The translations under genes and the position numbers were made by a program. A stretch of DNA of 64,000 bases, taken from positions 62,001 to 126,000 of the IMG/VR virus record IMGVR_UViG_3300032296_003307; one strand, 5' to 3'. This document shows, in pieces, positions 9,220 through 27,017 of the stretch (the stretch's first letter is position 1; each line of letters begins with the position of its first letter). The notes beneath the pieces are model-generated. The model saw only the letters and a program-made list of their open reading frames with translations. It was not told the DNA's origin and made no database searches.

Positions 9220-9257
9220 ACTTTGTAAATTAATAACAGAAAATAATATTTATAAAC

Positions 9258-9560
9258 ATGAATAATTTCGATTTAAAAAAATATTTAGTAGAAAATAAAT
9301 TAACTAAAAATAGTCAAGTAGAAGAAAATGAACTTGAAAATATATTTAAACTAGATAATCAAAACAGGCAAATTACTTTTGACTTGAGAAAACTATCTAA
9401 TTCAGAATTTGAAGAAATATATGATTCATTGACTAATAACCCTGATATATATAGAATAAGAACTTATGGAAATGGTTTTATAGAGGTTGATTTAAATGAA
9501 TTAAATAATGAAAATAAATTATTATTGTTGAAATACAAAGATAAGATAAAAATTAAATAA
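9258..9560 (+). CDS. Cassette ORF with MNNFDLKKYLVENK leader, putative virion-internal protein
   Basis: TATTTATA upstream, hairpin downstream; leader similar to 48863. Confidence 0.7.
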   Translation: MNNFDLKKYLVENKLTKNSQVEENELENIFKLDNQNRQITFDLRKLSNSEFEEIYDSLTNNPDIYRIRTYGNGFIEVDLNELNNENKLLLLKYKDKIKIK

Positions 9561-9574
9561 AAACAAATAAAGTT

Positions 9575-9601
9575 AAGCTTGGGAAACCAAGCTTTCTTTT
9601 T
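9575..9601 (+). terminator. Hairpin AAGCTTGG-GAAA-CCAAGCTT + T-tract, overlapping a TTGG-N19-TACATT promoter
   Basis: Perfect 8-bp stem with GAAA tetraloop; near-identical copies at 20155 and 26978. Confidence 0.85.
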
Positions 9602-9621
9602 TACATTATTGATTATAAATT

Positions 9622-9768
9622 ATGTTTCAAAAAATTAAAGAAAGAATATTTCCTTTCCTGATAGCATTTTCTGCCTTATCAGTTAGTGCATCAGCTGCTT
9701 TTTATAGCGTTACTGGTCTCAGCATGTTATTTGCTGGGGCTAGTTTCGCTGTAATTATTATTTTCTAA
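9622..9768 (+). pseudogene. Second dead 5' stub (48 aa) of the membrane-protein gene at 10403
   Basis: FLIAFSALSVSASAAFYSVTGLSMLFAGASFAVIII aligns without gaps to WLITFCALGLGGTAAYYSVIGLSKMFAGVSTAVIIM of the 10403 ORF; ends in TAA just before the HNH leader. Confidence 0.85.
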
Positions 9769-9775
9769 AGAATTA

Positions 9776-9829
9776 GTTTTTTCATTACTTTTTAATTAGA
9801 ATTAATATATTTATAATAAATGAAAAAAC
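9776..9829 (+). promoter_or_regulatory. Inverted repeat covering the HNH start codon, with the late promoter in the loop
   Basis: GTTTTTTCATT (9776-9786) pairs with AATGAAAAAAC (9819-9829); TATTTATA at 9808-9815. Confidence 0.75.
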
Positions 9830-10410
9830 GAGAACATTACACAGGAAGACCTAAGGGTTTATCCAAAAAATATAAAGAATTAATTTATATAGGGGCTAAA
9901 TTTGGTAGTTGGGAAGTAATTAGTGAAGAAGTAATAAAGAGTAATTACGGTAAAAACACAATTAGATGTAGATGTAGATGTGGTAATGAAAAAAATGTTG
10001 ATGTTTACACATTAGGCAAAGACTCACAAAGTTGTTTTAATTGTGGTCATAACAAAATAGGTTCTGAGCATCAAAATTATAAGGGATATAAAGAAATACC
10101 TCAAAAATGGTTTAGTAGATATACACGTAGAGATAGAGAATGCAATATTAAAATAGAAATGATATATGATTTATGGCTAGAGCAAGATAAAAAATGTGCT
10201 TTAAGTGGAATCCCTATTGACTTTAAAAATACAAACCCAAACCCAAAAAACTATAGATGTAATGCCTCTTTAGATAGAATAGATTCTACAAAAGGTTATA
10301 TAATAGGAAATATACAATTAGTACATAAAGACATTAATAGTATGAAAAGTGATTTTGAACAAAATTACTTTATTAAAATGTGTAAATTAATATCAATAAA
10401 TAATGAATAA
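9820..10410 (+). CDS. His-Me finger (HNH-like) homing endonuclease
   Basis: CRCRCG, CFNCG, CALSG and ASLDRIDSTKGYIIGNIQLVHKDINSMK. Confidence 0.8.
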   Translation: MKKREHYTGRPKGLSKKYKELIYIGAKFGSWEVISEEVIKSNYGKNTIRCRCRCGNEKNVDVYTLGKDSQSCFNCGHNKIGSEHQNYKGYKEIPQKWFSRYTRRDRECNIKIEMIYDLWLEQDKKCALSGIPIDFKNTNPNPKNYRCNASLDRIDSTKGYIIGNIQLVHKDINSMKSDFEQNYFIKMCKLISINNE

Positions 10411-24403: not shown

Positions 24404-26014
24404 ATGAGTAAAATTATAGAATTTGGCCCTGAGGCACGTAAAAAACTATCAGCTGGTGTTGATAAACTAGCAGATGCTGTTACAGCAACACTTGGTCCTA
24501 ATGGACGTAACGTAGTTATTGATAATCATGGTATTCCTCAATCAACAAAAGATGGAGTTACTGTAGCAAAATCAATTACTTTGGAAGATCCAATTGAAGA
24601 ATTGGGAGTACAAATGGTTAAACAAGCAGCTATCAAAACTGCAGATCATGCTGGAGATGGTACTACAACATCTACTTTGTTGGCTCAAGAGATGGTTAAA
24701 CAAGGTTTGGCTCATCTAAACAATGGAGCTAATGCTGTAGAAATCAAACGTAGCATTGATAAAACAGTTAAAGAATTGGTTGAATTTATTCGTACTGAAA
24801 TCAAAGAAGATATTTCATCTGAAGACCAACTTAAACAAATTGCCACTATTTCAGCAAATAACGATCCTGAAGTAGGTGAATTGATTGCTACTGCAATGCA
24901 AAAAGTAGGTCGTGAAGGAGTTGTGTTTATTGAAGAATCTAAAAATGGTGAAACATATCTTGAAACAGTAGAAGGTATGCAGTTTGACAGAGGTTATAAA
25001 TCACCTTATTTTGTTACTGATAATAACTCAATGACTACTACTCTACATGATGCTTTGATTTTGATTGCTGATAAGCGTTTTACTACTGTAAAAGAATTGT
25101 TGCCTATTTTAGAAGCAGTTTCAAACCAAAATAAACCTTTAGTATTAATTGCTGAAGATGTTGATGGAGAAGCACTTGCTACTTTGATTGTTAACAAAGC
25201 TCGTGGTATTTTGAAAGTGGTTGCTGTAAAAGCTCCTGATTTTGGAGATCGTCGTAAATTGTTACTTGAAGACATTGCTATTATGACTGGTGGTCAAGTA
25301 TTCAGTACTGAAAAAGGTATGAAACTTGATAAGTTCAGTTGGGATTGGTTTGGTCAAGCTCGTGTAGTTACTGTAGGTAAAGACGAAACCACTATCGTTG
25401 ATGGTAAAGGCAGTGAAGAAAAAATCGCAGCACGTATTGAAGAACTTCAGGCACAAATTGATAAATCAACTTCTCCTTACGAAAAAGAAAAATTGCAAGA
25501 ACGCTTGGCCAAGTTTATTGGTGGTGTAGCAGTTGTTCATGTAGGTGGATTTACTGAAGCTGAAATGCGTGAGAAAAAAGACCGTGTTGATGATGCTTTA
25601 CAAGCCACTAAAGCAGCTCTTGAAGAAGGTATCGTTCCAGGTGGTGGATCTGTACTATTACATGCTCGTACAAGTATTAATGTTGAAGATATTGGTTCAC
25701 AAATCGTTTATAATGCTTGTGCTGCCCCATTTAAGAAAATCCTTTCAAATGCTGGTTATGAGCAAGAAAATATTTACAATGCTATCAATGCTGTAACAGG
25801 AGGTGATTACTGGTATGGTTGGGATCTGAAAGCAGAAGATTTTGTTGATATGAAAGAGGCTGGCATTATTGATCCTTCAAAAGTAACTCGTACAGCACTT
25901 GAAAATGCAGCTTCAGTAGCAGGTACTATTCTATTAACAGAAGCAGTTGTAGTTGACAAGCCCGAAGAAAAGAAAGGTGATGATGGGCTTGGAGGTATGA
26001 TGGGAATGATGTAA
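24404..26014 (+). CDS. groEL: Chaperonin GroEL
   Basis: [48 protein letters not shown] tail. Confidence 0.97.
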
Positions 26015-26024
26015 ATTTAAAATT

Positions 26025-26213
26025 ATGAAGGATGCAGTAGCTTTAGAAGGTCAAATTCTTAAAATTGAAGGTGTTGACCATGTTATTAAAAACTTTTATT
26101 TTGTGCCCAATACTAATTATCTTTATGTAGGGCTGTTAACACCACAAAATACAACTATTAACTATGCCTTCGAAAAGCTACTGCCCTACTTAATTGAACA
26201 AATAAAGTTATGA
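26025..26213 (+). CDS. Hypothetical protein
   Basis: Short ORF in operon. Confidence 0.5.
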   Translation: MKDAVALEGQILKIEGVDHVIKNFYFVPNTNYLYVGLLTPQNTTINYAFEKLLPYLIEQIKL

Positions 26214-26479
26214 GTAAAACAGAAATCCAAGAAAAACTAATTGAAATTGCTCAACGTGTCCCACCAGGAGATCAATGGAAAGTAAATAATGTTAATGCTG
26301 TTCAAAAATCTTTAACAGATGCTTTAGAAGCATGGTTTCAAATAGCAACAGTTAAACCTAAAGCATTTCGTTTAGATTTGGCTCAAGGTAAACTTTTTGC
26401 TATATTACCTGAGGAAGTAGAAATACAAGAACCGGAACCTAAAAAATATTCAATTTACGGAGATTATACTTTAGATTAA
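26210..26479 (+). CDS. Hypothetical protein
   Basis: Short ORF in operon. Confidence 0.55.
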   Translation: MSKTEIQEKLIEIAQRVPPGDQWKVNNVNAVQKSLTDALEAWFQIATVKPKAFRLDLAQGKLFAILPEEVEIQEPEPKKYSIYGDYTLD

Positions 26480-26543
26480 GTTTTTTTATTTGGTGACTTA
26501 AATTCTTTTTCGTATATTTATAACAAAACAAAAACTCAATAAA

Positions 26544-26951
26544 ATGAAAGACATAATTAGAATAAATCAATTAGCTGGCATTATTACCGAAGGTCAAGCC
26601 AGAAAGATGATGCAAGTATTAAATGAAGAAGAAACTAATGAATATTCCTTAGAAAATCTAATTAAACAATGGGTTAATGATAATGCTGGGGGTTATGGTC
26701 CTGATAAAGATGATCCTCAATATTTCAAATTTAAGAAAGAAATGAATATGCTTCTTAATAATACTCTTGAAGAATTTAATCCTGATTATTATGGGGATGA
26801 TACAACAATGAGTCCTAATGATATATTAGAAGATTTTATAGAAGAAGCTGTTAATATTATTTCTAAATATACAATGGGTTACTATGGAGATGATACCTCA
26901 TTCAGTCCCGAAGATATTAAGGATGATTTTTATATTTTTATAAAAAGGTAA
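26544..26951 (+). CDS. Cassette ORF with MKDIIRINQLAGIITE leader, acidic
   Basis: Leader shared with 19528; internal repeat YYGDDT-x-x-SP-x-DI-x-(E/D)DF occurs twice. Confidence 0.75.
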   Translation: MKDIIRINQLAGIITEGQARKMMQVLNEEETNEYSLENLIKQWVNDNAGGYGPDKDDPQYFKFKKEMNMLLNNTLEEFNPDYYGDDTTMSPNDILEDFIEEAVNIISKYTMGYYGDDTSFSPEDIKDDFYIFIKR

Positions 26952-26977
26952 ATAAAACTTTATTTATATTTTAAACT

Positions 26978-27003
26978 AAGGCTTGGGAAACCAAGCCTTT
27001 TTT
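26978..27003 (+). terminator. Hairpin AAGGCTTGG-GAAA-CCAAGCCTT + T-tract, also the clamp-loader promoter
   Basis: Identical to the 20155 copy; TATATT 19 nt downstream of TTGG. Confidence 0.88.
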
Positions 27004-27017
27004 ATTATATTAATGTT

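Follow-up and report, generated by a model that had tools for sequence, protein, structure and literature searches.

A window of 64,000 nucleotides (nt), bases 62001-126000 of the 268,739-base-pair (bp) IMG/VR virus record IMGVR_UViG_3300032296_003307 (32% G+C), was analysed for short gene cassettes that end in a hairpin. Our preferred reading, to which we assign a probability of roughly 0.7, is that these are small mobile gene cassettes resembling the promoter-early stem-loop (PeSL) cassettes of T4-type phages (Arbiol, Comeau and Krisch 2010, PMC2839356; Comeau et al. 2014, PMC4122927), with a promoter embedded in the stem and with cargo that is probably addressed to the capsid. Each cassette would consist of three parts. 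The first is a 5' module in which TTGGnn, a 17-nt spacer and TATATT are overlapped by the late-type box ATATTTATA; the second is a single open reading frame (ORF) as cargo; the third would serve twice, as RNA by ending the cassette transcript with a GCTTGG-GNRA-CCAAGC hairpin and a U-tract, and as DNA by supplying, with the TTG of its 5' arm, the -35 element of a TTGnnn-17-TAYATT promoter. The evidence consists of the DNA sequence and of its comparison with contigs of metagenomic relatives (labels such as L288; P marks proteins).

The initial annotation had placed three cassettes of common layout in the window, and all three were recovered at its positions (Table 1), each ending, as described there, in a GCTTGG-GAAA-CCAAGC hairpin followed by a T-tract. 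The 16-mer GCTTGGGAAACCAAGC is present in exactly three copies in the window, where none is expected (100 shuffles, even with two mismatches allowed). Cassettes 2 and 3 do share their 5' DNA before diverging, but the shared stretch had been put at ~110 bp and ~25 codons and actually measures ~165 bp (~70 bp of noncoding DNA plus ~31 codons), beyond which the two are unrelated. According to our own reading of the alignment, the differences within the shared codons are mostly synonymous and the leader peptide therefore appears to be under selection. The 5' module of cassette 2 was found at other sites in two relatives (L288 and L091), and a close homologue of the cassette 3 cargo (P0087) lies one junction away in another contig. 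At the site of cassette 1, relatives L046 and L101 carry cargo that is common in the leader only and then different. A further cassette of the same layout, unnoticed in the initial annotation, lies near 53 kb, and the whole 268.7-kb genome holds six hairpin-in-promoter units.

The hairpins have folding energies of -11.7 to -15.8 kcal/mol (z of -3.6 to -5.2 relative to shuffles); in the same folding analysis no folding was found for the 5' modules. When 30 diverse copies of the hairpin were aligned, 99.6% of the cells were paired, with compensatory changes at three pairs, and the observed covariation score was reached by none of 500 shuffles. Non-Watson-Crick pairs read on the T-tract strand comprise 28 G.U/U.G and 3 A.C/C.A, which argues for an RNA stem and not for a DNA palindrome. 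The core GCTTG...CAAGC is invariant across the 30 copies, as is expected because the 5' arm contains the -35 TTG and the 3' arm is forced to pair with it. The G+C-rich stem and the U-tract that follows it on the transcribed strand are those of a rho-independent terminator, and we infer that the element acts as an intrinsic terminator. No Rfam match was obtained in positions 9000-27300 at E-values up to 1. An integron attC-like reading was rejected, the hairpin being short and perfect and carrying a T-tract; no integrase turned up near the cassettes, although no search aimed at integrases was made.

The promoter was examined in 117 non-redundant hairpins with CTTG in the 5' arm and a T-tract, drawn from this genome and its relatives. 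A TAYATT box is present in 82 of them, and all 82 show the -35, the spacing of about 17 nt and the -10 of a sigma-70-like promoter; the fixed distance between stem TTGG and TAYATT reported at first is thus exact, as TTGNNN-17-TAYATT, in every boxed element. This spacing is kept across 12 combinations of arm, loop and stem length, a loop one base longer being matched by a T-tract one base shorter. Among the 80 cases that have an ATG within range, 48 show their first ATG 6-8 nt downstream of the box, and this short distance suggests that the messages are leaderless. In this genome TTG-N3-N17-TAYATT has 60 matches, against 14-28 for the other spacers in the range 13-22. An ATG 5-8 nt later that opens an ORF of at least 40 amino acids (aa) follows 11 of the 60, against 0-3 for the other spacers, and eight of these 11 have no hairpin. 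On account of this enrichment and of the nearness of the ATG, we take TTGG-17-TAYATT-6-ATG to be a genuine promoter class of the phage, placed mostly before replication-region genes, and the hairpin version to be a special case in which -35 and spacer are built into the stem-loop. A reading of the stem GCTT as a MotA box was dropped, since its distance from the -10 differs from that in T4 middle promoters.

The box ATATTTATA has 51 copies on the + strand and 12 on the - strand, nearly always 3-40 nt before an ATG; the label late-type reflects its presence upstream of the portal, tail-tube and baseplate-hub genes. The copies in cassettes 2 and 3 share bases with the TATATT of a hairpin-less TTGG-17-TATATT promoter, so that both early and late expression of these cassettes is plausible. 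Under a Bacteroidota-type TTTG/TAnnTTTG reading, TATATTTA of the 5' modules fits at 7/8 positions; most ATATTTATA sites have no upstream TTTG. An orphan ATATTTATA box stands at 9171-9179, directly after the ribonucleotide-reductase stop codon, and is followed only by ATGTGGAATAG; it may be the leftover of a lost cassette 5' module.

The junction upstream of polB was compared in 62 relatives and is found in three states. The upstream stop codon may overlap the polB ATG (TAATG), with neither hairpin nor promoter; a solo hairpin-promoter may occupy a gap of 59-64 nt without cargo; or one or two cargo ORFs, from at least eight unrelated families, may precede the hairpin-promoter. On the polB tree 17 state changes are needed (shuffled mean 36.7), several of which are forced by well-supported branches alone. 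At the clamp-loader junction 47 of 57 distinct relatives have neither hairpin nor promoter box, among them the two closest at this gene (96% identity); a TTG-17-TAYATT box scored as hairpin-less is present in 9/57, though one of these (L274) has a variant hairpin, and the standard hairpin is present in 1/57. In the contig closest to the genome (polB 91%, clamp loader 96%) the genes at both junctions overlap, the sites are empty and neither cassette 2 nor cassette 3 is present. In L208, whose clamp-loader N-terminus is 99% identical, a different 201-aa cargo lies between the same ends, and another leader cassette is inserted one junction upstream of the clamp-loader site. A contig from another lake joins position 19453 to 20225 through the TAATG state, and the 3' half of cargo 2 is missing in three other lakes. 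The elements thus stand at points of insertion, deletion and replacement between close relatives, as do PeSL-type sites.

The search of related genomes for the hairpin and the 5' module, in which the cargo was catalogued, gave at least eight cargo families at polB and cassette 2 at a second site. It bears out the initial proposal of swappable cargo between conserved ends, since cargo differs among relatives at the same sites; the same cargo at the same sites in all relatives, which would have spoken against the proposal, is clearly not what is seen. The comparative evidence accordingly favours a gene-capture format with conserved ends and changeable cargo. In cassette-free relatives the core genes overlap stop to start. 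A cassette could be inserted between such genes without cutting off the downstream one because it would bring both a stop and a restart, the stem promoter allowing transcription to resume 6-8 nt upstream of the next core gene's ATG, probably as a leaderless message.

Occurrence at two sites is documented for cassette 2, which lies between the dCTP-deaminase-like gene and polB. In L288 ~720 bp of DNA are 93% identical to it while the flanks are unrelated, and the encoded protein, 92% identical to cargo 2, lies not beside polB but between homologues of the genes that flank window positions 567 and 620. The homology is bounded by the T-run before ATTTGGAAACC on the left and by TTATTACATT on the right. 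The corresponding site of this genome has no cassette and shows a hairpin-less promoter, TTGGCA-17-TACATT; the L288 cassette sits exactly between the -35 and the -10 of this resident promoter. Such an insertion geometry argues both for a replacement promoter, as the initial annotation had proposed, with the stem TTGGGA taking the place of the displaced -35 at 17 nt, and for recombination between promoter-like ends, which has been proposed for PeSLs (PMC2839356). Of the three downstream genes whose promoter was said to be re-created, polB and the clamp loader fit; the membrane-protein gene does not, the ORF after hairpin 1 being only a 48-aa duplicate of its 5' end. In a contig of sequencing run X1, from a source-like sample, position 20188 at the end of the cassette 2 promoter box is followed by ATATA and then by 19525, the start of a leader ORF, with a depth equal to that of the genome; this back-joint would fit either a circular cassette or tandem copies in a strain that occurs alongside. 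For PeSLs, promoter and terminator activities have been measured and mini-circles are formed.

Site 1 has a different appearance. Its 48-aa ORF duplicates the first 44 codons of the membrane-protein gene and is 91% identical in amino-acid sequence to the L046 and L101 copies but 51% identical to the resident one; the full-length resident gene (10403-11494) is 69% identical to the L046 and L101 copies. An HNH-type ORF lies between the duplicate and the full gene, and the arrangement looks like a homing-endonuclease co-conversion that carried cassette 1 along. A fourth copy of the hairpin, with a GTAA loop, is located at genome position 2859 upstream of a DnaG-like primase gene. A GIY-YIG-like ORF of 146 aa (genome 2419-2874, L004:1060-1515; best match phrog_447, with further matches to homing-endonuclease families) ends directly in this hairpin, and in many relatives a leader cassette is inserted between the two.

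The expression 'leader ORF' of the initial annotation holds in so far as a conserved leader exists; a regulatory leader peptide it is not, the leader being an N-terminal protein tag. Three classes are distinguished: A (MKDIIRMNQLAGIITEGQAKKMMxxLxE, variant EEFKRMQKLAGI), B (MDNFDLKKYLVENK) and C (MKxSQLRQLIREE...LNE). One of them begins 40 of the 63 distinct ORFs that end just before hairpin elements, and the late-type box precedes 34/40 of these leader ORFs compared with 3/23 of the others. Leader A is carried by more than 150 protein clusters with unrelated C-terminal remainders and keeps >90% identity across these cargo families. In all three classes conservation stops at L-x-E or I-x-E. 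T4 prohead protease cuts after Glu in L/I-x-E motifs, and the T4 internal proteins have at their N-terminus a capsid targeting sequence of 10 residues, which the protease cleaves off (PMC9026906). The genome encodes two gp21-like proteases (PF03420, E-values 2e-30 and 2e-24), and the leaders, which like those of the internal proteins are conserved short N-terminal segments on otherwise unrelated proteins, end at a site of the prohead-protease type where cleavage is predicted.

A possible docking partner is suggested by the head module, in which portal, small genes, protease, an acidic 363-aa scaffold-like protein and the major capsid protein follow each other in T4 order. The C-terminal end of the scaffold-like protein, ...KPIMEVNDQFARWQKLAGIK (tail also given as ...PIMEVNDQFARWQKLAGIK), includes RWQKLAGIK. 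In the open six-frame segments of the whole genome the pattern [QKNE][QKEL]LA[GN][ILVM] has just three matches, one in each of the two A leaders and one in the scaffold tail. A C-terminal R[WM]QxLAG[IL] tail is kept in 36/36 distinct scaffold homologues, with an I/L-x-E site before it in almost all. From this shared motif we infer that leader A mimics the scaffold docking tail and that the cargo proteins are probably targeted to the capsid and trimmed there. A structure model of cargo 2, of moderate quality (mean predicted local distance difference test score 64, predicted template modelling score 0.36), contains two N-terminal helices, a disordered linker at residues 28-47 around the predicted cut, a beta domain and an alpha/beta domain. 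Searches of Pfam and PHROGs with the three cargo proteins gave nothing but a weak GroES-like match (E-value 6e-4), which was disregarded, and look-ups of the protein clusters provided no names for the cargo.

Taken together, the cassettes might spread in three ways. Ordinary recombination in the flanking core genes might pass a cassette from one genome to another at a given site, recombination of the promoter-like ends might bring it to new sites, and homing endonucleases might sometimes carry it as a passenger. The cargo proteins would most likely enter the prohead, be cut there by the gp21-like protease and travel inside the virion. A more far-reaching version, to which we give somewhat less than even odds, is that the cassettes form a payload library, addressed to the capsid interior by the N-terminal copy of the scaffold tail, set free there by the prohead protease and brought into the next host along with the DNA, the dual-coded end avoiding polarity.

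Several points weigh against the preferred reading. Recombination at promoter ends cannot explain all insertions, since overlapping-gene sites have no promoter. In about 22 relatives a solo hairpin-promoter follows core genes, which makes it a boundary element in itself and not strictly a cassette end; the initial account is refined on this point. The short leader motif is expected about once per genome by chance (a rough estimate), which renders its count alone uninformative and leaves the argument to rest on position and conservation. For leader B no counterpart in a head protein was demonstrated, and a head-type leader is missing from part of the cargo, for example from the lipoprotein-like proteins. 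In a search of RNA runs the sequence was found only in DNA metagenome contigs, a single RNA run containing 5% of its words. Prediction of a complex between the major capsid protein and residues 1-45 of cargo 2, run without controls, gave a score of 0.00 and no answer; it is listed with these points although it counts neither way.

The doubt about the leader can be given a definite form: instead of a capsid address it could be an oligomerization helix, a decoy against the scaffold-capsid contacts of competing phages or a functionless fragment of the scaffold gene. We give this an appreciable, if minor, chance, as packaging is deduced from sequence, the complex prediction was uninformative, the motif is internal in protein P0017 and in one relative (L025:900-1000) an A-type leader ORF is stopped right after ...AGIITEG, the stop codon separating it from a cargo that restarts at an internal Met. 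A mere fragment or helix would hardly retain >90% identity over more than 150 cargo families, differ mostly synonymously between cassettes 2 and 3 or lose its conservation exactly at (L/I)xE in three classes; most leader ORFs, moreover, share the late-type box with structural genes, and the T4 internal proteins are a direct precedent (PMC9026906). Mobility, in turn, could be driven by free-standing homing endonucleases that co-convert neighbouring DNA, and not by recombination at the cassette ends. Site 1, where the HNH ORF separates a donor-like 5' fragment (91% identical to relatives) from the resident copy (69%), has the typical footprint of co-conversion, and at site 4 the GIY-YIG-like ORF precedes the hairpin, with the leader cassettes of relatives between the two. 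As a general explanation this is unlikely: no endonuclease gene lies beside cassettes 2 or 3 or the L288 copy, and the homology of the transposed cassette ends exactly at promoter boxes.

Two further readings concern the hairpin itself. It could be mainly a DNA site, a palindromic target of a recombinase, homing endonuclease or repressor that only looks secondarily like a terminator and promoter; the invariance of GCTTG...CAAGC in 30 copies exceeds the needs of a terminator, endonuclease-like ORFs abut hairpin 4 (GIY-YIG) and follow cassette 1 (HNH), and the same idea was raised for PeSL stems by their authors (PMC2839356). We regard it as quite unlikely in view of the 28 G.U against 3 A.C pairs on the sense strand, the asymmetric GNRA loop and one-sided T-tract whose orientation to the genes is fixed, and the absence of an endonuclease near cassettes 2 and 3, the invariant core being explained by the -35 TTG together with pairing. 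Very unlikely, in our judgement, is ordinary regulatory punctuation, that is, a preferred terminator/promoter maintained by selection with the variable ORFs as accessory genes at operon boundaries. Solo hairpin-promoters after core genes without cargo, the many genes driven by hairpin-less promoters of the same class and other terminators of the genome that are also followed by promoter boxes would all fit it. It does not account for ~720 bp that are 93% identical, noncoding ends and ORF included, at two junctions with unrelated flanks, for the empty overlapping-gene states in the closest relatives, for the replacement of cargo between conserved ends in the 99%-identical L208 or for the 17 state changes on the polB tree.

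Table 1. Cassettes and neighbouring features in the window (window numbering).
Feature	Position	Strand	Details
Cassette 1, late-type box ATATTTATA	9246-9254	+	3 nt before ORF
Cassette 1, cargo ORF	9258-9560	+	100 aa; leader class B (MNNFDLKKYLVE, followed by NK)
Cassette 1, predicted terminator-promoter	9575-9607	+	Hairpin AAGCTTGG-GAAA-CCAAGCTT 9575-9594, then T-tract; -13.4 kcal/mol
Cassette 1, predicted promoter		+	-35 TTGGGA 9579-9584, 17-nt spacer, -10 TACATT 9602-9607
48-aa ORF, duplicated 5' fragment of membrane-protein gene	9622-9768	+	Full copy 10403-11494
HNH/endonuclease VII-like free-standing ORF	9820-10410	+	Own ATATTTATA box at 9807; phrog_3322 (E-value 2.7e-19), phrog_1035, phrog_374
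Solo hairpin-in-promoter unit	11529-11557	+	TTGGAG-17-TACATT, GGAGGGGC-GAAA-GCCCCTTC filling the spacer, no T-tract
Cassette 2, 5' module	19460-19527	+	T-run, TTGGAA 19475-19480, 17 nt, TATATT 19498-19503, A-rich leader
Cassette 2, ATATTTATA box	19499-19507	+	Overlaps TATATT
Cassette 2, cargo ORF	19528-20130	+	200 aa; leader class A (MKDIIRMNQLAGIITEGQAKKMMEILTE)
Cassette 2, predicted terminator-promoter	20155-20188	+	Hairpin 20155-20176; -15.8 kcal/mol
Cassette 2, predicted 3' promoter		+	-35 TTGGGA 20160-20165, 17 nt, -10 TACATT 20183-20188; polB ATG 20195, 6 nt on
Cassette 3, 5' module	26480-26543	+	T-run, TTGGTG 26490-26495, 17 nt, TATATT 26513-26518
Cassette 3, ATATTTATA box	26514-26522	+	Overlaps TATATT
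Cassette 3, cargo ORF	26544-26951	+	135 aa; leader class A
Cassette 3, predicted terminator-promoter	26978-27011	+	Hairpin 26978-26999; -15.4 kcal/mol
Cassette 3, predicted 3' promoter		+	-35 TTGGGA 26983-26988, 17 nt, -10 TATATT 27006-27011; clamp-loader ATG 27018, 6 nt on
53-kb cassette, unnoticed in the initial annotation	53102-53923	+	ATATTTATA 53102-53110; same layout
53-kb cassette, cargo ORF	53147-53875	+	Lipoprotein-like, 242 aa (MKKLLFALTLIGMISFIGC...), no head-type leader
53-kb cassette, 3' element		+	Variant GGTTGG-stem hairpin 53888-53913, TTGGTT 53895-53900, 17 nt, TACATT 53918-53923
Hairpin-less promoter TTGGCA-17-TACATT	575-603	+	Empty version of the L288 insertion site

The solo unit at 11529-11557 resembles the polyG/polyC stems of RB49 PeSLs. 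Secreted-looking cargo akin to that of the 53-kb cassette also precedes polB in relatives L126-L129.

The window carries T4-type replication genes (family-B polymerase, gp44-like clamp loader, ribonucleotide reductase, a dCTP-deaminase-like gene and GroES/GroEL), and gp20-, gp21- and gp23-like head genes lie elsewhere in the genome. Judged by this gene set the phage would be T4-like and is presumably lytic. The nearest isolate polymerase, that of Microcystis phage Mel-JY01, is only 33% identical, metagenomic relatives number in the hundreds, and the sequencing runs that contain the sequence are mostly labelled as freshwater or lake-water metagenomes; we assign the phage to a clade of uncultured freshwater T4-related phages distant from isolates. 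The chaperonin genes are located at 24069-26014 of the window (GroES-like, Cpn10, E-value 3e-19; GroEL-like, Cpn60, E-value 1e-69), with an HSP20 gene near them in one relative.

The genes for terminase, portal, protease, scaffold and major capsid protein are present in two diverged sets, at genome 25-35 kb and 228-238 kb (L289), with amino-acid identities of 28-44% between them, and the replication genes are single; the two head modules are either a real feature or the product of a chimeric assembly. All cassettes and the scaffold gene with the matching tail lie within the first 116 kb of the genome. The second scaffold ends in ...QFLRMKDLMGKLQK, a diverged form of the RWQKLAGIK tail. Genes with the late-type box have A-rich leaders without a Shine-Dalgarno sequence, and promoters of the TTGG-17-TAYATT class stand 6-8 nt before the ATG; both features hint at a host with weak use of Shine-Dalgarno sequences, for example a member of the Bacteroidota or a streamlined low-G+C freshwater bacterium.

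The cassettes would extend the shuffling of genes by promoters and stem-loops from the T4 relatives of coliphage, Yersinia-phage and vibriophage type to a very distant and abundant freshwater clade. Their design would be tighter, in that a single 16-bp hairpin has to satisfy the demands of an RNA structure and those of a -35 element, and it would account for the insertion of accessory genes between essential replication genes that overlap. The motif common to leader and scaffold tail provides a testable hypothesis for the loading of varied proteins into T4-like heads and singles out more than 150 proteins as candidates for head delivery, among which there may be anti-defence factors. If true, the pairing of scaffold mimicry with a promoter inside the stem would be a principle of design new to T4-like phages. 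The newest and most testable element is the leader that would mimic the scaffold; the terminator-promoter cassettes themselves are of the known PeSL kind.

Lambdoid morons are similar in that an extra gene with its own promoter and intrinsic terminator is placed between genes that are adjacent in relatives, and this arrangement is found here. The phages that carry morons are temperate; the units lie in late operons there, and their expression is typically from the prophage. Morons rebuild no promoter for the downstream gene, whereas the present insertions do so by our reading and lie in the replication gene region of a presumably lytic phage with a T4-like gene set. The leaders have their counterpart in the T4 internal proteins IPI, IPII and IPIII, which likewise combine a conserved short N-terminal propeptide with unrelated small proteins, end it at a Glu that fits the prohead-protease motif, occur together with a gp21-like protease and vary as a set between phages (PMC9026906). 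The leaders described here differ in being longer (12-31 aa) and of three classes, their genes are scattered between replication genes instead of clustered, and their packaging is predicted from the genes. To our knowledge, a leader that repeats the C-terminal tail of the scaffold has not been described for T4.

The closest known system is that of the PeSL cassettes of T4-type phages. Common to both are a composite of a terminator and a sigma-70-like promoter with N17 spacing, an AT-rich upstream stretch (PMC2839356, PMC4122927), small flanked ORFs without an assigned function, a position at points of insertion, deletion or replacement between close relatives, and the character of self-expressed modules that can be inserted without disturbing neighbouring genes. 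In PeSLs, however, the stem-loop lies just upstream of the promoter, whereas here the two overlap, the 5' arm containing the -35 and the spacer being made up by the loop and the 3' arm. PeSLs are numerous and lie in hyperplastic regions of non-essential genes; the present units number 5-6 per 269 kb and stand before primase, polB, clamp-loader and other replication-region genes, with the ATG 6-8 nt after the -10 and no Shine-Dalgarno sequence. The cargo here also differs in having its own late-type box and a conserved protein leader, and the clade is far removed, its polB being 33% identical to that of the nearest isolate.

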